Shown here one piece after another: positions 9,893 to 34,098 of a DNA stretch of 64,000 nt. The DNA lies in sequence record MZ475898.1; one strand, given 5' to 3'. Both the position numbers and the translations under genes were made by a program. The notes under the pieces were generated by a model. It ran no database searches. It was not told the DNA's origin and worked only from the letters and a program-made list of their open reading frames with translations. The number at the start of each line of letters is the position of its first letter. Position 1 is the stretch's first letter.

Positions 9893-10438
9893 ATGAAACA
9901 TCCTCAGCGCGTTGCTCATTTAGAGCATTGGTTGGAGGCGGGTCGCGCCGCTTTCACCATGGGTGTGCGTACACCAAATAAAGATGGCGTGGAGCTGCTT
10001 GCTATTTTCCGTGCTGTGTCTCGTGGTACAAAAGACCAGTGCGCTGCATCAATCAAAAAGCAAACGGCAGAACTGATTGAAGACATTGAACGCGATGTGC
10101 CTGCCTTCAAAGTCATTCGTCGTCGCTTCCGCAAAGAGTTTTATCCTGACTACAACATACCAGCAGAAGTCGAGCTGTATGTTGCGCTTCTGGCGGAGAC
10201 GTTCGGTGACATTGTGCAGACGATGACGTACCTGCATCTTCGTCGCTGCGTCGATACTAAGGACCTACTGCTTAACTGGCTGCCAAATGGCTATCCAGCT
10301 AAAGACGCTATGGGTCTCCTGTGGAACTTACAGAAAGTGCCTACCGAGAACGAGTTCATGTTCACCGGAAATGCGGTAGACTGCATACAATCTGTAAATG
10401 ACCTATACAACAAAATGTATAAGACAGGAGACAAGTAA
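9893..10438 (+). CDS. hypothetical protein (181 aa)
   Basis: ORF with AGGA RBS. Confidence 0.65.
   Translation: MKHPQRVAHLEHWLEAGRAAFTMGVRTPNKDGVELLAIFRAVSRGTKDQCAASIKKQTAELIEDIERDVPAFKVIRRRFRKEFYPDYNIPAEVELYVALLAETFGDIVQTMTYLHLRRCVDTKDLLLNWLPNGYPAKDAMGLLWNLQKVPTENEFMFTGNAVDCIQSVNDLYNKMYKTGDK
10390..10399 (+). promoter_or_regulatory. ATCTGTAAAT motif
   Basis: Exact copy, 39 nt upstream of ATG 10438. Confidence 0.5.
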
Positions 10439-11025
10439 TGGATTTATCTTCTATCGGCTATGCAAACAAACCATTTCGCGTTATCCCTGTTACTTCTGGT
10501 AATATCGTAACTGATTTCATTGCCGGAAAGTTTCAGGTGATTGGCGTTGAGTGTAATGCTCGTGGTGCGTATGGCTCGCCGATTCAACAAAGCATTGCAC
10601 GCCGCTTCCCTGACGTGTTGCAGAAGATGAACGCGCTCGACTACGACCACCAGAACTTCATGGGCAGCACGTTGATGCATCCTGTGCAGACTCAGCATCG
10701 TCGTCGTTTGTTTGTCGCTAACATGTTCCTTGCACGCGGCTTTGGGTTAGGCCAGAATCGCACTCAAAGTGAAGGTCCGATTAATCGTTTCAGTGAGCGA
10801 CACTTGACGCAAGCCTTCGACAGTCTTGTTGATAGCTGTGCATCACTCAACATTAGTCTGGACCGCCAGATTGCTGTGCAGCGTTTCTACGGCGGTCTTG
10901 GTGGGGTATCTTGGGAAGAAGTATGTGAAGTGCTGGACGCTATTTGCGCCAAGCATAAATTCAACATGCTGGCTTATCTGCCTAAGAACTATAACTCTAA
11001 CTTTGTGCGGGGTTCTGCGCAATAA
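10438..11025 (+). CDS. macrodomain protein (Poa1p/TARG1/DarG-like)
   Basis: ECNARGAYGSPIQQSIARRFP, VANMF and GGLGGVSWEEV follow the macrodomain pattern. Confidence 0.7.
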   Translation: MDLSSIGYANKPFRVIPVTSGNIVTDFIAGKFQVIGVECNARGAYGSPIQQSIARRFPDVLQKMNALDYDHQNFMGSTLMHPVQTQHRRRLFVANMFLARGFGLGQNRTQSEGPINRFSERHLTQAFDSLVDSCASLNISLDRQIAVQRFYGGLGGVSWEEVCEVLDAICAKHKFNMLAYLPKNYNSNFVRGSAQ

Positions 11026-12111: not shown

Positions 12112-12492
12112 GTGGATAAGAATGAAATCACGTTGTTGATTGACAGTCTGAACGGCAATCGCAATTTCCCAATCGATCCAGAAGCTGCAATAGGCATGAC
12201 CCTTGAACAGTTCATCAAAACCAATGGGAACTTTGTGTTTCTCATGAATGATGCGCTCGTCCGTGACATGGTAAGTAAGCAGCATGAGTACGATCCAAAC
12301 TTCGTACCAGCTACTACTCTCGACGAAATCAACAACGGTCTTATGGGAACTTTCCACGGCGTCAATGTGTACAGCACTTGGGTGTATCGTGCTCCTGGGG
12401 ATCTGCCTGCGGAAGCGAAGCCTCGTTTCGGTATGTATCGCGCCGACCTAAAACAAATCTTCCCGTTGACTAAACATTTTATCGTAAAGTAA
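12112..12492 (+). CDS. hypothetical protein (126 aa)
   Basis: GTG start with AAGGA RBS. Confidence 0.6.
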   Translation: MDKNEITLLIDSLNGNRNFPIDPEAAIGMTLEQFIKTNGNFVFLMNDALVRDMVSKQHEYDPNFVPATTLDEINNGLMGTFHGVNVYSTWVYRAPGDLPAEAKPRFGMYRADLKQIFPLTKHFIVK

Positions 12493-12504
12493 AACTGTTT
12501 ACGG

Positions 12505-12510
12505 TAATTT
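12505..12510 (+). promoter_or_regulatory. TAATTT core in intergenic gap upstream of cmoA
   Basis: 39 nt upstream of ATG 12544. Confidence 0.3.
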
Positions 12511-12543
12511 CTGAAGGTCAATCAGAATAACGGAATCCTCATC

Positions 12544-13314
12544 ATGAGCAATATCGATACTACAATGCCTAAAGGCAAATGGGAGTTCAACGAGTCAGTT
12601 GCTTGCGTGTTCGATAACATGCTGCAAAACTCCATCCCGTCTTATGCCCGTATGCGTGACCTGACGTACCGTCTTGGTCGTCGCTTCGTAACTCCTGGTT
12701 CAGCTATCGTTGATCTCGGTGCCTCCTTGGGTCGCGCTATCGAACCGTTTGCAAAAGAGTTCGGCAAGTATGACTATCATCATGCTGCTGACGCTCCTGG
12801 CGAAGACTACGAAACAGGCAATCACTACAGCCTGTATGAAGTAGCTCCAGCTATGCGCGAACGTCTGGTGCAGAATGAAGTGCTTCTCTCAGTGAATGCC
12901 AAACTGGAAAGTGAATCGCTGGTAGATACTGACACGTTTATGTTCGACGGTCAGGTGCATTGCTCGTTGATTCTGAGTGTGCTAACTCTCCAGTTCACGC
13001 CGATTGAACATCGTCAACACATTCTGGAAAACGTGTACAACTCACTGCAACCAGGCGGCGCATTCATCCTCGTTGAGAAGGTGTTAGGCGATAACAACTA
13101 TCTCGACAAAATGCTGGTGGACACCTACTACCAGATGAAAGGTGGTAACGGTTACAGCGCCGAGTCGATTGCGACTAAACGTAAGTCACTGGAAGGCGTA
13201 CTCGTTCCTGTTAAAGCAGCGTGGAACGAAGAACTGTTGCGTAAAGCAGGCTTCGGTCAGGTAGAAAGTTTCTATCGCGACCTGAACTTCGCAGGATGGA
13301 TTGCTATTAAGTAA
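12544..13314 (+). CDS. cmoA: CmoA-family carboxy-S-adenosyl-L-methionine synthase
   Basis: Co-linear with E. coli CmoA: WEFNESVACVFDNM, DLGASLG, TLQF, PGGAFILVEK, NGYSAESIATKRKSLEGV (keeps the Arg equivalent to R199), LRKAGF, LNFAGWIAIK. Confidence 0.88.
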   Translation: MSNIDTTMPKGKWEFNESVACVFDNMLQNSIPSYARMRDLTYRLGRRFVTPGSAIVDLGASLGRAIEPFAKEFGKYDYHHAADAPGEDYETGNHYSLYEVAPAMRERLVQNEVLLSVNAKLESESLVDTDTFMFDGQVHCSLILSVLTLQFTPIEHRQHILENVYNSLQPGGAFILVEKVLGDNNYLDKMLVDTYYQMKGGNGYSAESIATKRKSLEGVLVPVKAAWNEELLRKAGFGQVESFYRDLNFAGWIAIK

Positions 13315-13323
13315 GGAAATACT

Positions 13324-14586
13324 ATGAAAGTAAACGGGCGTATCTTAGCTATCGTCCCACACAAGACAATGCAAGACCGTACCAAGTCGGGTGTGGGTTC
13401 GTACATTGATGGACTAGAGGCATACGGCTTCTGCGACTTTATCACGGACGGAGAGAACAGCTCCGTTACGAAAAGTCAGTGGTTCACTTACGGTGATACT
13501 ACTCTCAGTGACGGTTATAAGATAGGGCATATCCAGAGCGAGTTGCTGATTGCACTTGAGCGCTTGCCTTACCGTGCGATTATTTGCAGCACGTATGAGG
13601 CGATTGAAGCCTGCGTGTCTCTGGGACTGCCAAAGATTATGCCCGTTTACTATCGCACGCACAACAGCTTTTTGCTCACACAAGATCTCAAGGGTCTTGG
13701 TGCAGAGAAGATCCACCGTGCGTTGTTGCAAGCACGCGTCACAGGGCTGCGCATCCTTGCTAACTGTGATTCGACTGCGATCAATCTTGCTGAGCGCTAT
13801 AAGACGCCAGCACACGTGGCCTACAACTCGTTCTCGGTGCCTGACTACAACCCACCAGCGCGGCGTTCTCCGCAACTGCTGATTATCTGTCGCTATGAGA
13901 AGGTCAAGCGCACGTTGTTTGCTGCGCGTATTGCTGCTGCATCAGGGTTACCCGTTCGTGTTATGACAGGCAGTGATCGTCAAGTACGCAATTGGGAGAA
14001 AGAGCTGGCTGAGGCGGGTGTCAAAGAATATACGGTCGTCAGTGGCCTTAGTGGTAAACAGAAACTCGAATTTATAGGCGCTTGCACAGTAGCCCTTTCT
14101 ACTGCGAGCGTTGAATCTTTTGCTAACGGTGTGCGTGAGTCTATCCCCTACTGTCCTACCTTTATCGTGCAAACATCCAAGTACGATTGGGCTAAGGACT
14201 ATACGCGCTTCTGTACTGCCGACAAGCATGTTCATATCAGAACTGTTGATCGCGTATCAGACCAAGCCGTAGCCGAAATCGGAAGTGAGATAGCGCAAAC
14301 AGCTACCACACGTTATCTGACAGGGCCGCAGCGTAAACAACTACTGACTGCTTGGGCAAAGCAAGTTGATCGTGGTTGGTCCGACTTTGTTCAGAAGGCT
14401 GTTGTTGACGATGACGGCAAGCCGCTGCGCACCGAGCTGTATCAAGAACTGATCGACAAGTCAGAGATCGATTGGTCACAAACGCCCACGCTGATGCGTA
14501 CTGTAAATGCGTTACATAAATGCCACGCTCGTTTGGGCCTGACATTTGATGGCACTAAAATCAAATATAAGAGGAAGCGCAAATGA
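13324..14586 (+). CDS. GT-B (GT4-like) glycosyltransferase
   Basis: SGVGSY, LLIICRYEKVKR, and STASVESFANGVRESIPYCPTFI matching the S..E.FG....EA..G.PV donor-binding pattern. Confidence 0.75.
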   Translation: MKVNGRILAIVPHKTMQDRTKSGVGSYIDGLEAYGFCDFITDGENSSVTKSQWFTYGDTTLSDGYKIGHIQSELLIALERLPYRAIICSTYEAIEACVSLGLPKIMPVYYRTHNSFLLTQDLKGLGAEKIHRALLQARVTGLRILANCDSTAINLAERYKTPAHVAYNSFSVPDYNPPARRSPQLLIICRYEKVKRTLFAARIAAASGLPVRVMTGSDRQVRNWEKELAEAGVKEYTVVSGLSGKQKLEFIGACTVALSTASVESFANGVRESIPYCPTFIVQTSKYDWAKDYTRFCTADKHVHIRTVDRVSDQAVAEIGSEIAQTATTRYLTGPQRKQLLTAWAKQVDRGWSDFVQKAVVDDDGKPLRTELYQELIDKSEIDWSQTPTLMRTVNALHKCHARLGLTFDGTKIKYKRKRK

Positions 14587-15659
14587 GTGTTATCGGTGAT
14601 ATTTATAACATCCCACAACCGTTCGCAATGTATGTCGGGAATTGTGAGACGCGTGCTCAAGCCAAAGTTGCTGCTGGCACAATCGAGTGGGCGCCAGAGA
14701 AAGTGTGCTGCACCGTAGATGATGGTAACAACCTGTTCCCCAACGTACCTTCAATCAACCCTGCTGACGTGCATAAGACAGATGCAGAAACTTTAGTGAT
14801 TGGCTGTGCACCTTTCGGCGGCCGCATTGACGAGCACATGGACAAAGCTATTCGTAGCGCTATCTATCGTGGACGCAACATTGCTGCTGCTATGCATACG
14901 CGCCTGGCGGATAACCCCGAATACGTTGAGCTGGCCGATCGCTACAACGTCAAGCTGTATGACTTCCGTCATCGTCCTGATGCGTACCCACTAGGTACTG
15001 GTGAGAAGCGTAGCGGTCTGCGTCTGTTAACTGTCGGTACTGATAGCTCCTGCGGCAAGAAGTTTACCACGCTGTCTCTGTATCGTGAACTAAAGCGCAT
15101 CCACGCAGACACTGTGTTTTGCTCTACTGGTCAAACAGGCTTCCTGATTAGCGGTTGCGGTATCAACAACGACACGATTGTTGCTGACTTCCTTGCTGGT
15201 GCTGCTGAATCCCTTTCGCCTGCAGGTCCTGCTGATCGTATCTATCTGATTGAAGGCCAGGGCGCTATCACGCATCCAGCCTACACAGGCGGTAGCATGA
15301 GCTTGATTGCTGGCTCTCAGCCTGATCATCTCATCCTGTGCCACGCATGGAACCGCCAGAATCAGTTGGGCGTTAAGCGTAAGCCTGACCTTGATTTTGA
15401 GATGCGTGCTAACATTGAAGCGGCGCGTATTCACGGTCTCAACCCGACCTACATCGGTATCAGCATTAACTTCTCTGAGTGTGATTTGACACAGGACGAG
15501 CAAGATAAAATCCTGTACCAACTCGCATCAACGTATGAGATTCCCGTGTTCGACCCATCACAGGACACTTCTGTGCTGCGTGACCTCGCTCGTATGTTAG
15601 CAACTAAAGCCAAAGCAAGGAGCCTCGATGGCCAAGCATCCACTGCGCAAGCTGTTTGA
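14583..15659 (+). CDS. DUF1611 / DgcN-like P-loop protein
   Basis: VIGCAPFGG, TVGTDSSCGKKFT, STGQTG, VADFLAGAAE, IEGQGAITHPAY, GSQPDHLILCH. Confidence 0.88.
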   Translation: MSVIGDIYNIPQPFAMYVGNCETRAQAKVAAGTIEWAPEKVCCTVDDGNNLFPNVPSINPADVHKTDAETLVIGCAPFGGRIDEHMDKAIRSAIYRGRNIAAAMHTRLADNPEYVELADRYNVKLYDFRHRPDAYPLGTGEKRSGLRLLTVGTDSSCGKKFTTLSLYRELKRIHADTVFCSTGQTGFLISGCGINNDTIVADFLAGAAESLSPAGPADRIYLIEGQGAITHPAYTGGSMSLIAGSQPDHLILCHAWNRQNQLGVKRKPDLDFEMRANIEAARIHGLNPTYIGISINFSECDLTQDEQDKILYQLASTYEIPVFDPSQDTSVLRDLARMLATKAKARSLDGQASTAQAV

Positions 15660-16503
15660 ACAGCATGTGAAAAAAGAAGTGAAAGCAGACAAGGTAGCTG
15701 TGCTGCTTTCATCTGGCCTCGATGGTTTAGTCAGTGCGTTAGCTGCACACGACCTGGGTAAGAAGGTACATGCCTTCACATTCCAAATGGGTGACAACCC
15801 TAGCTTCGACAGTCGCCACGCACAGATCGTTGCACAAAAGATGGGCTGGGAGTTCACGCTCGTTAAAGTTCCCACCAGCGTGTCTGCTATCGCGTTAGCG
15901 TGGCGCGTGCTTCATTCCAAGTATCGCTGCATCAAGAAGCGTGACTACGAGTGTGCATATCCTATGGTCTATTGCTACAAGGCAATCAAAGACGCTGGGT
16001 ACAAGTATGTGCTAAGCGGGCTGGTGGCCGATGGCTACTTCCTGTATAACCGTAACACGCACATTCAGAAAATCAGCGGCCCTCACTCTGACGCTCAGAA
16101 GTATCATGAGTTCCGTACTCAATACTTTAGTCCGTGGCTTAAACACGGTAAGAAGTCTCTGGGCGTTGACGGGTATAACCCGAGCGGCATGTTGCAGCAT
16201 GAGATGTTGTGCGATAACTTCGGCCTGATTCACGTTAACCCGTGGATGCAGAACAAGGTGTTTGACTACTTCATCAAATACACTTGGCAGGAGTTGAATC
16301 AGCCTAAGCAGAAGATGCCGCTGACCGAAGCATGGGCTGAACATATTGCACTGGTTGGTCATCGCCCACACAGAGGCTATCAGACAGAAGCCAAAGTGCC
16401 TGAATACTTTGAGCATCTGATCGATAGCCCTGAGATTAACTTCAACGGGCGCAAGCGCATCATGGACGTTGCACGCGACTGGTCCAAACGAGAGCCTGAA
16501 TAA
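15628..16503 (+). CDS. asparagine-synthase-type ATP-dependent amide ligase (synthetase domain only)
   Basis: PP-loop LLSSGLDG, VLSGLVADGYF, PWMQNKV, KMPLTEAW, RPHRGYQ; no N-terminal glutaminase domain. Confidence 0.82.
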   Translation: MAKHPLRKLFEQHVKKEVKADKVAVLLSSGLDGLVSALAAHDLGKKVHAFTFQMGDNPSFDSRHAQIVAQKMGWEFTLVKVPTSVSAIALAWRVLHSKYRCIKKRDYECAYPMVYCYKAIKDAGYKYVLSGLVADGYFLYNRNTHIQKISGPHSDAQKYHEFRTQYFSPWLKHGKKSLGVDGYNPSGMLQHEMLCDNFGLIHVNPWMQNKVFDYFIKYTWQELNQPKQKMPLTEAWAEHIALVGHRPHRGYQTEAKVPEYFEHLIDSPEINFNGRKRIMDVARDWSKREPE

Positions 16504-16757
16504 TGCATCCTGTTATCACAGACTTTCTTGGTCCTATCGTTAAGCGGCTGGGCCTATTCACTGCTATATTCGGTTTTGTCGGCGTGCTGCTGTCTGTGAT
16601 CGCAGTGCTTGTGTGCCGCCCAGAAGTCCTTCAATACGAATACGATACTGTAAATAGACTTCGTATTGAGGGTATTGTATTCTTGGGTAAAGGCGTTCTC
16701 GTTTACATCGTAGGCGAGATACTTGAAGGCACGTTCAAGTGGAGAAAAGATGATTAA
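16503..16757 (+). CDS. small membrane protein
   Basis: Two hydrophobic segments; TAATG coupling. Confidence 0.55.
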   Translation: MHPVITDFLGPIVKRLGLFTAIFGFVGVLLSVIAVLVCRPEVLQYEYDTVNRLRIEGIVFLGKGVLVYIVGEILEGTFKWRKDD

Positions 16758-17020: not shown

Positions 17021-17473
17021 ATGAATCTGTTTTCTATTTTAAAACAGCAAGTGAAGAAATCCCTGACGACCGAAGCAACGCTTGAGCCAGAAGTGCGCAA
17101 ACACTTTGACTGGCGTTTCAGTGTTGACGTCAAAGGTCTGATGTACATTGTAGGCAAGACTGGTGCTAACACCTGCTTCTATCTTGAGCCAGGTCACGTT
17201 GAGCCTACTGCCTGCTATCCTGATGAACTACTTGCGAAGATTGATAGCTGGGGCGCTGCTAAGTATGTGTCCTACGCTGTCTATTTCAAGAAGTTCACCA
17301 GTCCTGTAGCTGAAAACATCAAGACGCTTGAGCAAGCCAAGACAGGCAAGCCTAAAGCGTTTAAGAAAGGCTACTTTATCTGTGGCGTAACACCGAAAGG
17401 TAAGCGCGTCAAACTGTGTCGTCTGCACAACAGCCTAAGCGGTATGCAGTGGGTTGATGTAGACCAGAAGTAA
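17021..17473 (+). CDS. hypothetical protein (150 aa)
   Basis: GAGG RBS. Confidence 0.6.
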   Translation: MNLFSILKQQVKKSLTTEATLEPEVRKHFDWRFSVDVKGLMYIVGKTGANTCFYLEPGHVEPTACYPDELLAKIDSWGAAKYVSYAVYFKKFTSPVAENIKTLEQAKTGKPKAFKKGYFICGVTPKGKRVKLCRLHNSLSGMQWVDVDQK

Positions 17474-19129: not shown

Positions 19130-19531
19130 ATGAGACCTGAAAACATTTCACGCACCTATCGCGTCGGTCAGTCTGACCTGGAGAAAGCACACAACGTCTG
19201 CGGAGAGAACAATGTAACACTCTCAGATGTGGTACGCAGATACATCGAAAGAATCGTACTGACTGAGGGTGAGTTCCTTATGAGCGAGCGTAAGCACGTA
19301 CCTGAGTCTCAACTGAATGTACGCCTGCCCTTTTACATTGCGCACTCCTTTGCATCTGTGTGTAAGTCTCGTGGTACGTTAGCCTCTAAAACCATTCTCA
19401 ACTTTGTCAGGAATATTGCTCTTTCAGGTACTATCCCTGAGGAGTTAAAGTACGCCTCAGACACAGAGTTGCGTGCCTATATTACCTCCGAGCGCTCTCG
19501 CCTCGATGCACTGGAAGCAAAACTTAAATGA
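19130..19531 (+). CDS. tandem ribbon-helix-helix DNA-binding protein
   Basis: Two RHH-like units: RTYRV...TLSDVVRRYIE and QLNVRL...LASKTILNFV. Confidence 0.6.
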   Translation: MRPENISRTYRVGQSDLEKAHNVCGENNVTLSDVVRRYIERIVLTEGEFLMSERKHVPESQLNVRLPFYIAHSFASVCKSRGTLASKTILNFVRNIALSGTIPEELKYASDTELRAYITSERSRLDALEAKLK

Positions 19532-20367
19532 TTCTAACTAGCCCCATTCGCTATCAGGGTAACAAGCGCACTCTGATGCCTCTTATTCTCGAACATGCGC
19601 CTGTGAAGGATTGCGTTCGCATGATAGACGCATTCGGTGGTAGTGGTACTGTTGCGCTCAACATGCCTCACAAGTTTCGCATCTACAATGAACTGAGCAC
19701 GCCTGTGTTTGAGATCGTCCAGCTGCTTGCGCATCAAGACCCGAAGAAAACATTGGGTCAGATTAAGCGTATCGTCAAGCGTTTTTGTCTAACCAATAGC
19801 AGCCAAGACAACTACGACATGTTCCGTGCGTATGTGCAGAAGAAGCCAAGTCCGTTGTTCCATTACATCGCACACAGGCACGCACGCTCTAACATGCTGC
19901 GCTTCAACCAGAAAGGTATCTACAACGTGCCCTTCGGTGAGCGTGGCCTGATTGGTAAGTTCGATCAGCTTGAACAGGAGCTGGTGCAGTTCCACGAGCG
20001 TATGCAGAACACGCACATCACCAACATGCGCTATAACCTGTTGCTCAAGTCTGTGTCAAAGCATATCGGACCGAACACGTTCATTTACTTTGACCCTCCA
20101 TATCTTGCTAGTGGTGCAATGCAGTACGGCAAGTGGACTGAGCACAACGAGCGCAACCTGTTGTCCGTGCTTGAATATCTGAATCGTCAAGGCTGCCCGT
20201 GGATGTTGAGCAACGTTCTCCAACATCGTCATCACACTAACGACCTGCTCAAGCGCTGGCTAAAGAAACACGCAACGACTGTCATCTATCCTGACAAGTC
20301 TTATTCAATGGCCAACTCTCATTCCGATAGTCACAGCACTATCGAGATTCTGGCAATGAACTACTGA
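19528..20367 (+). CDS. dam: Dam-type (D12 class) DNA adenine methyltransferase
   Basis: SPIRYQGNK, IDAFGGSGTV, IYNEL, YFDPPY. Confidence 0.9.
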   Translation: MILTSPIRYQGNKRTLMPLILEHAPVKDCVRMIDAFGGSGTVALNMPHKFRIYNELSTPVFEIVQLLAHQDPKKTLGQIKRIVKRFCLTNSSQDNYDMFRAYVQKKPSPLFHYIAHRHARSNMLRFNQKGIYNVPFGERGLIGKFDQLEQELVQFHERMQNTHITNMRYNLLLKSVSKHIGPNTFIYFDPPYLASGAMQYGKWTEHNERNLLSVLEYLNRQGCPWMLSNVLQHRHHTNDLLKRWLKKHATTVIYPDKSYSMANSHSDSHSTIEILAMNY

Positions 20368-23377: not shown

Positions 23378-23762
23378 TCAGTTACGTGATCAATTGACCG
23401 AAGCTGAATACGCAGAACTTGAGCGCACGACAGCACGGTCAATCATGGAACAAGTGTGGGCACTACGCGGCTGGACGGTTAAGCTCGACTGGTGCAACTA
23501 TATGTGCGACGACGTTGATTGGTTATTCCATGGTAATGAACGTAAAGCACCAGTTGACCACGCTATGCCGAATTCTGGTGTTGGCACTAGCATTGAGCAG
23601 CATCGCCTTAATGTCGTGTTTACTCCTACTGAGGTTAGCGTTACGAACTCACTGGTAGATAGTCCTGTCACTGGTACTGGTATGTCACTGCGCTGTGCTT
23701 ACTGCGCGTGGCTTTTAGAAATCGAAAAACAAAAGGCTGCCAATGCGCTGCAATCTGACTGA
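23364..23762 (+). CDS. hypothetical protein (132 aa)
   Basis: ORF in operon; start uncertain. Confidence 0.5.
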   Translation: MSSVNQLRDQLTEAEYAELERTTARSIMEQVWALRGWTVKLDWCNYMCDDVDWLFHGNERKAPVDHAMPNSGVGTSIEQHRLNVVFTPTEVSVTNSLVDSPVTGTGMSLRCAYCAWLLEIEKQKAANALQSD

Positions 23763-24258
23763 ACTGCCTATCAAACTCGATCAGGCTGAAAACATTATGG
23801 GCAGCGTGTTTGCGCTTGCTGCTGGCTCTAAGTCCAAACGCCGTGCTACTGCTGCAATGCTCATCCATTTCCATGAAGGCTACCCTACGATCATCAGTAG
23901 TGGTGTCAATGGTACTGTGCCTGGTGAAAGCAACGTGTGTGAGAATGAAGACCTCACTCTGACGTTTGCTCACGTCACCCACGCAGAAGCTAACTGCCTC
24001 AATCGCATGGACGAATACAGTCTGTGGCCAGAAGAAGAGGACATCCTGTTTTGTACTGACAGCCCATGTCCTGATTGTTTGCAGCAACTCGAATCTGCTG
24101 GTGTGCAGACCATCGTTTATGCGCGTGAATACAGACTCACAGAGCACCTGGATAAGTCTGCTATTCGCATGTATTGTCTCGATATTGAGAACGTGAGGGC
24201 GTCTTTGCTGAAATCTGTAAATCGTATAGACGAAGTGATTGCAACCACACCTACTTAA
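23743..24258 (+). CDS. dCMP deaminase
   Basis: SSGVNGT, HAEANC, SPCPDC Zn-deaminase motifs. Confidence 0.9.
   Translation: MRCNLTELPIKLDQAENIMGSVFALAAGSKSKRRATAAMLIHFHEGYPTIISSGVNGTVPGESNVCENEDLTLTFAHVTHAEANCLNRMDEYSLWPEEEDILFCTDSPCPDCLQQLESAGVQTIVYAREYRLTEHLDKSAIRMYCLDIENVRASLLKSVNRIDEVIATTPT
24213..24222 (+). promoter_or_regulatory. ATCTGTAAAT motif
   Basis: Exact copy, 54 nt upstream of ATG 24276. Confidence 0.5.
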
Positions 24259-31262: not shown

Positions 31263-31961
31263 ATGGCAAAAATTGCTAAAGCAAAGGAAGGGAAAAAGAA
31301 AAGCAACCCTATGTTGATTGACCTGAAAAAGTTCAAGTCAGTTAAACAGCTTAAGGGTGCGAAGTACAACCCTCGTTTCATTACAGACAGCCGACTGAGA
31401 GCGCTCGAAGGTTCTTTGGGCAGCTTCGGTGATTTGTCTGGCGTGGTGTTCAACAACAGCGTAGACAGTGGCGTATTGATCTCAGGCCACCAGCGTCTCA
31501 AGTCGATTGAGAAGTGGGACTCGCGCATTGAGATTCAACAAACGTCTGACAAGTACGGCACGGTAGCGTTGGGTTATATCCATGCTACCAGCGCCAAAGG
31601 TAAAACGATCAGCATCCCACTGCGTATCGTTAACTGGTCAGATAAGAAAGTGGAGTTTGCTGCTAACATTGCTGCGAATGCCCACGGCGGTGAGTTCGAT
31701 AACAAAAAGCTCGCGTCTCTTGTTGAGAAGCTGGACCTGACTACAATCAAGCCAGCTCTTATCGGGCTTGACCCGTTAGAGATTCGCGGCCTGCAACAGA
31801 CGCTGAGCAAACAAGCTATCGTCGAGCAGGAAAAGCGTGTTGGTAAAACAACAGGCAAAATGAACGGCAGTACTGGCGAGTTCAAAGAGTACACGACTGA
31901 TGAAGTTGGTACTGCGCTGACCTGCACCTGCCCACGTTGTGGCTTTAAGTTCGAGGGATAA
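31263..31961 (+). CDS. ParB/Srx-like N-terminal domain protein with C-terminal Zn-ribbon
   Basis: YNPRFIT, SLGSFG, ISGHQRL, ANIAAN..GGEFD, CTCPRCGFKF. Confidence 0.85.
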   Translation: MAKIAKAKEGKKKSNPMLIDLKKFKSVKQLKGAKYNPRFITDSRLRALEGSLGSFGDLSGVVFNNSVDSGVLISGHQRLKSIEKWDSRIEIQQTSDKYGTVALGYIHATSAKGKTISIPLRIVNWSDKKVEFAANIAANAHGGEFDNKKLASLVEKLDLTTIKPALIGLDPLEIRGLQQTLSKQAIVEQEKRVGKTTGKMNGSTGEFKEYTTDEVGTALTCTCPRCGFKFEG

Positions 31962-31962
31962 C

Positions 31963-34098
31963 ATGATCATCAAGCCGCCTACAATGAAAGAGATTAATAA
32001 GCTGCCCAAGCCTTGGTCAGGTATGAGTTTCTTTGCAGGTTGCGGTGGTTCATCTACCGGTCACAAGATGGCCGGTATTAACATCCTACTGAGCAACGAG
32101 TTCGTGGACGCGGCTCGTGAATCGTATGAAGCGAACCATCCAACAACCAAAGTGTTGCCCCACGATATTCGTCGTCTTGACCCGAAAAAGCTGCTTAGCT
32201 ATTGCGGCCTGAGTCAGGGCGAACTGGACTTGCTCGACGGCAGTCCTCCGTGCTTCACCGAAGACACGTTCATTCATACCGACACTGGTATGAAGTTCAT
32301 CACTGATATGCGCATCGGTGACTTCGCTATGACCTCTGTTGGTAAGTATCATCCAGTGTATGACACGATGGTACGTCCGTATGACGGTCAGATGCACAGA
32401 ATTGAAACGCTGCTTGGTCAGAACAATGCAACGCCTGAACATCCGTTCTTTGTTCGTCGTCAGAATGAAGAAACTGGCGGGTACAGTGCGCCGTTCTGGT
32501 GTGACGCTAAAGATGTGCAGGAAGGTGACCTGTTAGGTACGCCTCGTGTTACGCCTGATATGGGCGAAGCACACACGCATGAGATTATCTCGTCGTTGAC
32601 TGCGCAGCTTGTGCGTTGGATTGCATTGCCTGAGTTCTGGTGGCTGATTGGTCACTGGTGCAATCGCGGTGCAATCGATAAGATTCGTGGTGTCGATGTT
32701 ATTCAATTCACCTCGATGACAGCGATGGAAAACTCGCTGGTGGAACAAGCGTTCGACGTGCTCAAGTTAAGCAGCATCAACAGCGCTTCGTCCGACATGG
32801 GCGTTCATCGTAAGACCGTTCGTGTTGTTATGGACACAGACCTGTTGCTGTTCTTGCGTATGTTTATCGCGCAGGGCAAGAAGTCTATGTCCCGCCGTCT
32901 GCCTGGCATGATCTTCCATCTGGCTAAAGAGCTGAAACAGCAATTCATTCTCGGCTATCTGGGTCGTGATTACGTCACAGCAATGGGCGTTGGTCATGCG
33001 TTAGAGGCTGACTCAAAGCGCTTCCTAGTTGAGATGAATTACCTGTGCTGCTCTGCGTTCAACAGACCGCTGTTCGATGCAATGTTGTTCACTGACTTGC
33101 ATTACGGTAGTCCGATGTTACCACCGAGTCGCTTCATTACCAAAGAGCACATCGGCTTCCTGTTCTTGCAAGAAGAGGTTAATTTCTTCTTTGAGTTCGA
33201 GCCGGAAGACCCGCATCTGTGGGTTGAAGTGATTGAGAACTTTACGCATCATGAAACGTGCAACGTCTATAACTTCTCAGTCAGTGTTGATGAGACGTAT
33301 GTTGCTAACGGCATGGTCGTGCATAACTGCAAAGGGTTCTCGACTGCTGGCGTGAAAGAAGACGGCTGGGGCAAAGAGGTTAAGTACAGCGGCAACAAGT
33401 ATCAGCAAGTCGATGACCTGTTCGATCAGTATTGCCGTATGCTCAAGCACATGCAGCCTAAAACGTTCACTGCGGAAAACGTTAGTGGCCTCGTTAAAGG
33501 TGCGTCGAAGGGTTACTTCATTGAAATCATGAAGACCTTTGATCAGCTGGGCTACTATGTGCGAGCGCCGTTGCTTAATGCTGCGTGGCTTGGTGTGCCT
33601 CAGTCTCGTGAGCGTATCATCTTTATGGGTGTGCGCAAAGACGTGGCGAAAGCACTCGGCTATAAAACTGCGTTGACTGCTGTGCCTGATGTAACACCTC
33701 AATCAAGCATGGCGTTCCTTGCAGATGCATTGCCGAACATTCGTCGCTATAAAGGTACGGAGCGTGACATTATCAAGTATCTGCCTGCTGTTAACGGCCC
33801 GATGCCTACGATTACCGCTGCTGATGCTATCGCATACGAAACAGCACGCTTCTCCTCTGCTGGCTTCATTGAAGACGACAAAGGGCACAGACGCAAGCTG
33901 ACGATTGACGAACTCAAAGTTGTGTCAGGCATGCCTAGTGATTACGTGCTCACAGGTAAGTTTGAAGAACAATGGGAACGTCTCGGTCGTGTGTGCGTAC
34001 CTGCAATGACGTGTGCTGCGGCAAGCGCGTTGATACGCCATGTGCTTGAGCCTTACGCAAAGCTGCGTAAAAAGAAACCTGGGGATCGTTTTCGTTAA
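31963..34098 (+). CDS. C5-cytosine methyltransferase homolog with intein; predicted carboxymethyltransferase (CmoX-like)
   Basis: Motif I FFAGCGG, IV DGSPP|CKGFS, VI AENVSGL, VIII PQSRER; motif X reads ERLGRVCVP (Arg where Asn is normal). Confidence 0.88.
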   Translation: MIIKPPTMKEINKLPKPWSGMSFFAGCGGSSTGHKMAGINILLSNEFVDAARESYEANHPTTKVLPHDIRRLDPKKLLSYCGLSQGELDLLDGSPPCFTEDTFIHTDTGMKFITDMRIGDFAMTSVGKYHPVYDTMVRPYDGQMHRIETLLGQNNATPEHPFFVRRQNEETGGYSAPFWCDAKDVQEGDLLGTPRVTPDMGEAHTHEIISSLTAQLVRWIALPEFWWLIGHWCNRGAIDKIRGVDVIQFTSMTAMENSLVEQAFDVLKLSSINSASSDMGVHRKTVRVVMDTDLLLFLRMFIAQGKKSMSRRLPGMIFHLAKELKQQFILGYLGRDYVTAMGVGHALEADSKRFLVEMNYLCCSAFNRPLFDAMLFTDLHYGSPMLPPSRFITKEHIGFLFLQEEVNFFFEFEPEDPHLWVEVIENFTHHETCNVYNFSVSVDETYVANGMVVHNCKGFSTAGVKEDGWGKEVKYSGNKYQQVDDLFDQYCRMLKHMQPKTFTAENVSGLVKGASKGYFIEIMKTFDQLGYYVRAPLLNAAWLGVPQSRERIIFMGVRKDVAKALGYKTALTAVPDVTPQSSMAFLADALPNIRRYKGTERDIIKYLPAVNGPMPTITAADAIAYETARFSSAGFIEDDKGHRRKLTIDELKVVSGMPSDYVLTGKFEEQWERLGRVCVPAMTCAAASALIRHVLEPYAKLRKKKPGDRFR
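32251..33327 (+). mobile_element. intein (359 aa) with degenerate LAGLIDADG endonuclease
   Basis: Starts CFTEDT, block B ATPEHPF, ends VYNFSV...YVANGMVVHN, followed by Cys(+1), the catalytic Cys. Confidence 0.92.

Follow-up and report, generated by a model that had tools for sequence, protein, structure and literature searches.

Phage gene clusters for hypermodification of thymidine and 5-hydroxymethylcytosine start from a hydroxymethyl handle that is then elaborated by a kinase, amino acid transfer, glycosylation, or acetylation. A handle of another kind, a carboxymethyl group on cytosine, was reported only in December 2025, and the one product reported to be built on it is the glycine amide (Yang et al., 2025, Nat Commun; PMC12783734): in the cyanophage S-B43, CmoA makes carboxy-S-adenosylmethionine (Cx-SAM), CmoX makes 5-carboxymethylcytosine (5cxmC) at GC sites, and CmoY, with ATP, ligates glycine onto 5cxmC in DNA; the virion DNA contains 5-glycylcarboxymethylcytosine (5gcxmC). 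The same work provides the structure of SpCmoX (PDB 8YF3), reports that 5cxmC blocks HhaI, and lists 5,615 CmoX candidates and 2,251 associated ligases, the latter in several clusters that possibly use other amines; our literature search found no other paper on phage CmoA. Here we describe a four-gene operon (12544-16503, + strand) in the first 64,000 nucleotides (nt 1-64000, 'the window') of the Erwinia amylovora jumbo phage pEa_SNUABM_25 (MZ475898.1, 263 kb; 100% identity) that encodes homologs of CmoA and CmoY and, between them, a predicted glycosyltransferase (GT) and a DUF1611 protein; a predicted CmoX is encoded elsewhere in the window. We think it probable that this phage carries out a post-replicative cytosine hypermodification of the CmoA/CmoX/CmoY kind that is extended by donor tailoring (DUF1611) and glycosylation (GT).

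The core pathway is a published one; we found no description, in the literature searched, of the extension, which consists of a GT4 family, DUF1611 with its own ligase clade, racemase and 3-deoxy-D-arabino-heptulosonate 7-phosphate (DAHP) synthase genes in relatives, the phrog_23597 family, and an intein in CmoX. The window and the S-B43 system both have homologs of all three enzymes, a CmoX with the SPPC motif and the Cx-SAM carboxylate-binding Arg, a glutaminase-less ligase (the window's clade is sister to SpCmoY), no CmoB, and a ParB-like gene beside CmoX. The window differs from S-B43 in that CmoX is 18.6 kb from the operon and contains an intein at its catalytic Cys; the ligase has an SSGLDG PP-loop, is 33% identical to SpCmoY, and falls in a clade of its own on a long branch; and a GT4-type GT and DUF1611 are inserted in the operon. 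Relatives of the window differ further by an alanine-racemase-fold enzyme, DAHP synthase, and phrog_23597, none of which is in the main text of Yang et al. (2025). Glycosyltransferase, DUF1611, racemase, Erwinia, and intein are likewise terms that this main text does not contain; a preliminary description of this DNA, made from its letters, had named the S-B43 pathway, which does exist, and had placed the GT and DUF1611 steps beyond it, correctly so as far as that main text goes.

The RefSeq relative of pEa_SNUABM_25 is pEa_SNUABM_7 (genus Snuvirus); the remoter relatives are Alexandravirus (Alexandra, Dickeya phage AD1), Rivsvirus, and Sasquatchvirus. All four operon genes are labeled 'hypothetical protein' in GenBank, and the first is labeled 'tRNA methyltransferase' in RefSeq. 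We assign them as follows (pI, isoelectric point):

12544-13314, + strand: CmoA homolog (carboxy-SAM synthase), 256 residues, acidic, pI 5.3
13324-14586, + strand: GT-B/GT4-like glycosyltransferase, 420 residues, basic, pI 9.2, with a C-terminal poly-Lys/Arg tail
14583-15659, + strand: DUF1611 (DgcN-family) two-domain P-loop protein, 358 residues, acidic, pI 5.7
15628-16503, + strand: CmoY-like ATP-dependent amide ligase, Asn-synthase synthetase domain only, 291 residues, basic, pI 9.3

The first two genes are separated by 9 nt, the next two junctions overlap by 4 and 32 nt, in this order, and Shine-Dalgarno-like sequences (AAGGA, GAGGAAG, and AAGGAG) precede the GT, DUF1611, and ligase genes, respectively; the four genes are translationally coupled. 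A promoter/terminator scan around the operon gave no signal above shuffled expectation. The preliminary description had proposed these four adjacent or overlapping genes as a CmoA homolog that keeps the Arg equivalent to R199 of E. coli CmoA, a GT-B glycosyltransferase, a DUF1611/DgcN-like P-loop protein, and an Asn-synthase synthetase domain that lacks a glutaminase; it had recognized no CmoB in the window and had pointed to a spliced, Arg-type methyltransferase (MTase) at 31963 as the link to cytosine in DNA. All of the open reading frames (ORFs) are present on the + strand, and every one of these sequence-level claims held, on the evidence that we now give.

The first gene product matches the CmoA family TIGR00740 (E=3e-40; 138 bits vs the 193-bit equivalog cutoff, i.e., below it) and phrog_4752 (6e-78), and its best matches in the PDB are all CmoA (4GEK, 3e-28; 1IM8; 4IWN). 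It is 30% identical to E. coli CmoA (which, used as a tblastn query against the window, gives 2.5e-30) and 28% identical to the biochemically proven SpCmoA (E=4e-26); the latter is equally divergent and would likewise miss the TIGR00740 cutoff. The segment ATKRKSLEGV pairs with SQKRSMLENV of E. coli CmoA, and the aligned Arg is position 213 of the 4GEK chain, that is, R199 once the 14-residue tag is subtracted. By BLAST, SpCmoA itself (S-B43; locus L003, 5192-5887) has Glu at the R199 position and Arg four residues on (KEKELRD vs KRKSLEG); because this enzyme is active, conservation of R199 may not be strictly needed for Cx-SAM synthase activity.

The cellular role of CmoA is in tRNA modification, as the RefSeq label of the first gene recalls, and Cx-SAM also serves natural-product biosynthesis (Yang et al., 2025), so the cluster could modify RNA (of the uridine 5-oxyacetic acid, cmo5U, type in tRNA) or yield a small molecule derived from Cx-SAM instead of acting on DNA. 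We regard this as very improbable: E. coli CmoB in a tblastn search of the 64-kb window has a best E of only 2.4, and tRNA modification was rejected on this absence; a homolog of Arg-type DNA C5-MTases, nearest to the crystallized CmoX, is present and adjoins the module in relatives; and the closest relative of the ligase acts on 5cxmC in DNA.

The MTase is interrupted, and we searched its exteins separately; with the gene that precedes it, the locus reads:

31263-31961, + strand: ParB-like protein directly upstream of CmoX (phrog_620, 2e-31)
31963-32250, + strand: CmoX N-extein, motifs I-IV to ...DGSPP (PF00145; 51-56% identity to the N-terminal parts of module-linked MTases)
32251-33327, + strand: intein, 359 residues, before the catalytic Cys (Intein_splicing and Hint_2 matches)
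33328-34098, + strand: CmoX C-extein from the catalytic Cys (CKGFSTAG...), with the motif X Arg at nt 33988

The whole ORF (31963-34098) matches PF00145 (6e-38). In the PDB, the C-extein is closest to SpCmoX (8YF3; 6e-33, vs 3e-12 for HaeIII), and its ERLGRVCVP pairs with ERVGR350MVPP of SpCmoX, so the R350 position (N304 in HhaI) is Arg. The intein starts with CFTEDT, has TPEH as block B, and ends with VVHN; it splits GSPP|C, with SPPC made whole again by the +1 Cys of the C-extein. Because SPPC and the R350 equivalent are the features by which Yang et al. (2025) recognize CmoX candidates, we assign the MTase as a predicted Arg-type CmoX; this assignment, the proximity to SpCmoX, and the adjacency to the module in relatives link the operon to DNA cytosine. 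The intein is a mobile element inside the active site of a DNA-modification enzyme. L011 has a very different intein (~19% identity) at the identical position, and its near-identical allele L013 is empty, reading GSPPCSAFS across the insertion site, so the two (L011 6137-7288; L013 1712-2737) form an occupied/empty-site pair.

The pairing of ParB with CmoX recurs in PaBG and in L011/L013, and ParBc-CmoX association has been reported on many contigs (Yang et al., 2025). A C5-MTase directly adjoins the module in three independent metagenomic layouts as well as in PaBG, S-B43, and Staphylococcus phage F1; we confirmed the Arg-type MTase in L011, L013, L027, PaBG, and S-B43, and all of the module-linked MTases checked have SPPC and the Arg except that of Staphylococcus phage F1, in which a pattern scan found neither motif. 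As a check on its proposal, the preliminary description had suggested looking for co-occurrence with Arg-type MTases across phage genomes; in addition to the adjacency in relatives, CmoX is present in every DUF1611-bearing phage record (34/34). Conversely, in the phage collection DUF1611 is found only in genomes with the CmoA-CmoX-ligase module. CmoA, Asn synthase, and C5-MTase are jointly present in AD1 and Y3 and jointly absent from JA11 (PMC6143709).

The ligase matches PF00733 (2e-13), with positions 2-132 of the Asn_synthase profile on residues 6-138 and the PP-loop near residue 27, which leaves no space for a glutaminase domain. A sequence search of the PDB with the ligase gave nothing at E<=0.01. 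Its nearest relative outside its own clade (tblastn, phage genomes) is the 5cxmC:glycine ligase SpCmoY (33% identity over the full length, E=3e-50). In a maximum likelihood tree, the nine DUF1611-linked ligases form a clade (100/100) with a long stem that is sister to SpCmoY (100/99); members of this clade, which occurs only together with DUF1611, have SSGLDG as the PP-loop (residues ~27-32), whereas SpCmoY and the other ligase types have SGG(V/L)DS.

The ligase subtype follows the presence of DUF1611. Ligases encoded beside DUF1611 are 60-87% identical to that of the window, even where the CmoAs are only 41-59% identical; in sister jumbo phages that lack DUF1611, CmoA is 77-83% identical but the ligase only 24-29%. 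The DUF1611 and ligase clades are congruent in topology, consistent with co-inheritance and co-divergence of DUF1611 and this distinct ligase clade. L027 falls outside both clades, from which we conclude that DUF1611 was recruited to the CmoX-ligase-CmoA module at least twice independently. The separate long branch, the 33% identity to SpCmoY, and the pairing with DUF1611 together suggest that the amine used by the ligase differs from glycine; the text and supplement of Yang et al. (2025) list no glycine-pocket residues for SpCmoY.

The DUF1611 protein contains both domains of its family (PF07755, 8e-47, and PF17396, 6e-18, both above cutoff), and its best PDB match is the acetyl-CoA-dependent D-glutamate N-acetyltransferase DgcN (EC 2.3.1.312; 7XRJ, 4e-50); it matches the DgcN model NF041892 with 3e-85, yet with 286 bits vs the 480-bit cutoff. 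In a tree of 76 DUF1611 proteins, eight phage members form a clade (100/99 support). A scan of IMG/VR with the DUF1611 alignment retrieved only the Erwinia/Dickeya group plus one metagenomic genome; the more distant diversity of DUF1611 and the module was obtained through exact-protein look-ups of distant homologs. The phage proteins and DgcN share the two-domain architecture, ~40% identity, the P-loop GTDxxCGKK, and most of the invariant residues, that is, 54 of the 63 positions that are conserved in >=93% of 67 cellular DUF1611 relatives, P-loop included. They differ from DgcN in forming a separate clade below the equivalog cutoff, in the absence of a DgcA racemase partner, in the CmoY-like ligase that always follows, and in three positions that are invariant in the cellular relatives and fixed as replacements in the phage clade (R180C, H219 to variable residues, and D221Y); the L027 protein has the cellular residues at 180, 219, and 221. 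The window's protein is best described as a DUF1611 member and not a DgcN equivalog, given its score and the three replacements, with the scaffold retained, the pocket changed, and the chemistry possibly changed; because the replaced residues are family-invariant, the label 'acetyltransferase' is not secure for the phage proteins.

These features bear on where DUF1611 acts. The ligase could attach a diamine or diamino acid, after which DUF1611 would N-acylate the free amine on the DNA adduct, in line with the acetyl groups that the preliminary description had placed after amidation, and the GT would use a hydroxyl of this adduct. Other phages are known to have N-acetylated amino-modified bases, and both the activity of the nearest characterized DUF1611 relative (7XRJ) and the 54 retained residues with the P-loop fit such a reaction. 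We consider this order of events unlikely, if worth keeping in view. The phage DUF1611 clade has replacements at three positions that do not vary in the acetyltransferase family; its strict co-divergence with a single clade of ligases is easier to reconcile with a small molecule that both enzymes use than with a downstream step; and all nine lineages have an acidic DUF1611, in contrast to the DNA-acting partners. The last argument is a weak one. In every lineage, CmoA, DUF1611, the racemase-like proteins, and DAHP synthase have pI 5-7 and the ligase clade, GT, CmoX, ParB, and phrog_23597 have pI 8.9-9.9, a pattern that agrees, if weakly, with a division of the enzymes into a metabolite side and a DNA side.

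The 420-residue GT protein has no match in Pfam, NCBIfam, or PHROGs, so its assignment comes from its predicted structure. The AlphaFold2 (AF2) model, for which eight homologs served as input (predicted local distance difference test, pLDDT, 80.6; predicted template modeling score, pTM, 0.80), matches BshA, MshA, SenB, GlgM, and the GT of phage HY126 with a Foldseek probability of 1.00 and superimposes on many GT4 structures with template modeling (TM) scores of 0.55-0.66; a BFVD model of a GT ortholog agrees with it (TM 0.94). In the alignment of the family, the EX7E pair E264/E272 as well as R190/K195 are invariant. On the fold and the EX7E motif, as the preliminary description had proposed, the second ORF is a predicted GT-B/GT4 glycosyltransferase. 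The family is small: a set of 1.84 billion proteins contains 10 representatives at E<1e-30. Its homologs match Pfam Glycos_transf_1 mostly weakly and below threshold, with the second-tier representatives P0018 and P0023 barely exceeding the gathering score. The protein shares the two-Rossmann GT-B fold, EX7E, and the Arg/Lys of the nucleoside diphosphate (NDP) half with the GT4 enzymes (BshA, MshA, SenB, GlgM) and the HY126 GT (9IR0), and differs from them in sequence (10-16% identity), in having no Pfam match itself, and in an extra C-terminal region of ~100 residues with a poly-basic end. The HY126 enzyme, among the top structural matches, is from a phage that arabinosylates 5-hydroxycytosine in its DNA (PMC13326640).

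The comparison of gene orders bears on whether the GT and DUF1611 belong to the pathway. The module varies at the site between CmoA and the ligase; the L-numbered loci in this list are from distant metagenomic phages with other gene orders:

CmoA-ligase: Rivsvirus SNUABM_5, Y3, Yersinia phage fHe-Yen9-02
CmoA-DUF1611-ligase: Alexandra, AD1
CmoA-GT-DUF1611-ligase: the window (pEa_SNUABM_25)
CmoA-GT-DUF1611-racemase-ligase: pEa_SNUABM_3
CmoA-GT-DUF1611-racemase-like-ligase-DAHP synthase: L007
ParB-CmoX-GT-DUF1611-ligase-CmoA, CmoX with or without intein: L011-L013
DUF1611-ligase: L024
DUF1611-racemase-ligase: L025
GT-DUF1611-racemase-ligase: L026
CmoX-DUF1611-ligase-CmoA: L027
CmoA-GT-ligase, without DUF1611: L035
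GT-DUF1611: L036

Many phages with the core pathway have neither GT nor DUF1611, the structural neighbors of the GT are GT4 enzymes that act on small molecules or glycans, and bacterial DgcN-type enzymes are catabolic; on these grounds, only CmoA, CmoX, and the ligase might modify DNA (to a simple 5cxmC amide), with the GT and DUF1611 as passengers that act on host metabolites, the envelope, or virion proteins. This we find improbable, since the two genes are inserted between those of CmoA and the ligase, in reading frames that overlap, their association persists in at least six rearranged and distantly related contexts, DUF1611 was recruited twice to CmoX-ligase-CmoA modules and is confined to module-bearing genomes in the phage collection, and the ligase subtype switches with its presence; the repeated, rearranged co-occurrence led us to reject the passenger reading.

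The GT, the alanine-racemase-like gene, and DAHP synthase are optional add-ons. Four lineages have an alanine-racemase-fold gene with the pyridoxal phosphate (PLP)-Lys motif PVVKGxxYGxG inserted between DUF1611 and the ligase, and the window has none; the encoding regions are:

L004, 4324-5259: alanine-racemase-fold protein
L007, 10322-11287: alanine-racemase-fold protein
L025, 11055-12038: alanine-racemase-fold protein
L026, 9055-9957: alanine-racemase-fold protein

Because these proteins retain the PLP-lysine motif, they point to a D-amino acid somewhere in the synthesis of the donor. In L007, an AroFGH-type DAHP synthase (12162-13025; TIGR00034, 180 bits, cutoff 173) directly follows the ligase; the protein has only 287 residues and lacks the first ~45 positions of the profile, and its presence is consistent with a raised flux through the shikimate pathway to prephenate for CmoA. 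In Y3, which has CmoA with another type of ligase and neither DUF1611 nor GT, a 2-oxoglutarate (2OG)-Fe(II) oxygenase gene is just downstream (L031, 4978-5616); possibly, this gene is a further add-on to the pathway.

We propose a pathway of five steps, of which steps 1-3 rest on homology to characterized enzymes and steps 4-5 are those that we infer. In step 1, CmoA would convert SAM and host prephenate to Cx-SAM. In step 2, the intein would leave and restore the SPPC loop, and CmoX would carboxymethylate C5 of cytosine in phage DNA to give 5cxmC. In step 3, the ligase would adenylate the 5cxmC carboxylate and couple it to an external amine. In step 4, DUF1611, acting on the small-molecule side, would make or tailor the amine donor and thereby fix what the ligase attaches; the donor is probably an amino acid derivative and is possibly D-configured, because the gene of the alanine-racemase-fold PLP enzyme is inserted, in relatives, after that of DUF1611 and before that of the ligase. 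In step 5, the basic GT4-type GT would glycosylate the DNA adduct with an NDP-sugar of the host as the donor. The pathway would thus yield an amide derivative of 5cxmC that is glycosylated and most plausibly shields the phage DNA from host nucleases, as 5cxmC blocks HhaI. The more specific proposition, that Erwinia/Dickeya jumbo phages contain an undescribed base in which 5cxmC is amidated via DUF1611 with a tailored, possibly D-configured amine other than glycine, and is glycosylated in the GT lineages, we judge to be evenly balanced.

Several points weigh against this pathway. The CmoA homolog scores below the curated CmoA equivalog cutoff, the PP-loop of the ligase (SSGLDG) is atypical, CmoX is remote from the operon in pEa_SNUABM_25, and a functional CmoX depends on the predicted splicing of its intein. 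The DgcN score and the three replacements indicate that the chemistry of DUF1611 may differ from N-acetyl transfer; if it does not, N-acetylation of an α-amino acid would block the amine nucleophile needed by the ligase, so either the donor has a second amine or the DUF1611 reaction differs from that of DgcN. The best structural matches of the GT (BshA, MshA, SenB) use small-molecule acceptors, so the GT could put its sugar on the amine donor ahead of ligation. The argument from charge is weak since SpCmoY, which acts on DNA, is itself acidic (pI 5.8), and our literature search found no paper on DNA modification in these phages.

The locus and its relatives suggest a modular elaboration of the carboxymethyl handle akin to that in the hydroxymethyl-pyrimidine systems. 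As in the thymidine and 5hmC clusters, a handle on C5 of the pyrimidine would be followed by optional modules that are shuffled among related phages; the proposed pathway differs from them in that the handle is a post-replicative carboxymethyl group from Cx-SAM and that the next step is ATP-dependent amide ligation. DUF1611/DgcN-like proteins, the alanine-racemase-fold enzyme, the small GT4 family, and phrog_23597 have not previously been linked to DNA modification; if the pathway is correct, DUF1611 is a new class of enzyme in DNA hypermodification, and the naturally occurring gene sets (the ligase alone, then with DUF1611, GT, and racemase added in turn) provide ready-made pathway intermediates. 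Because cultured, closely related phages differ by exactly the GT, DUF1611, and racemase modules, the extension is readily testable. Possible yields are novel hypermodified bases, the assignment of a function to a DUF family, tools for site-directed functionalization of DNA, and an explanation for restriction evasion by these phages, which are candidates for biocontrol.

A candidate accessory of the module is encoded close downstream of the operon:

17021-17473, + strand: phrog_23597 protein, 150 residues, basic

Homologs are found within or beside the CmoA module in PaBG, L007, L012, L027, and L035 despite the rearranged gene orders; none was found in the fetched regions of S-B43 and the Staphylococcus phage. 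The invariant residues of the family are G45, K46, E61, K110, G117, G122, and W144. The protein has no Pfam match, and its AF2 model (pLDDT 88) has no structural match in the PDB (best E=0.03). A possible function as chorismate mutase was dropped, as the predicted fold is mostly β-strand, unlike that of AroQ, which is all-helical.

Other genes of note are encoded in the vicinity. An ORF of 84 residues with a hydrophobic stretch (16503-16757, + strand) overlaps the stop codon of the ligase gene; at this position AD1, Alexandra, pEa_SNUABM_3, and Y3 have a conserved ORF of ~206 residues, absent from the window, that has no Pfam or PHROG match. Upstream of the cluster, the ORF at 10438-11025 (+ strand) is annotated as a macro-domain protein in relatives (O-acetyl-ADP-ribose deacetylase/Appr-1-p processing); Pfam gave nothing for it at E<=0.01. 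The gene at 23743-24258 (+ strand) is a dCMP deaminase by annotation in the RefSeq relative. A Dam-like N6-adenine DNA methyltransferase is encoded at 19528-20367 (+ strand; PF02086, 2e-25), and for this reason the genome probably carries N6-methyladenine beside the cytosine modification.

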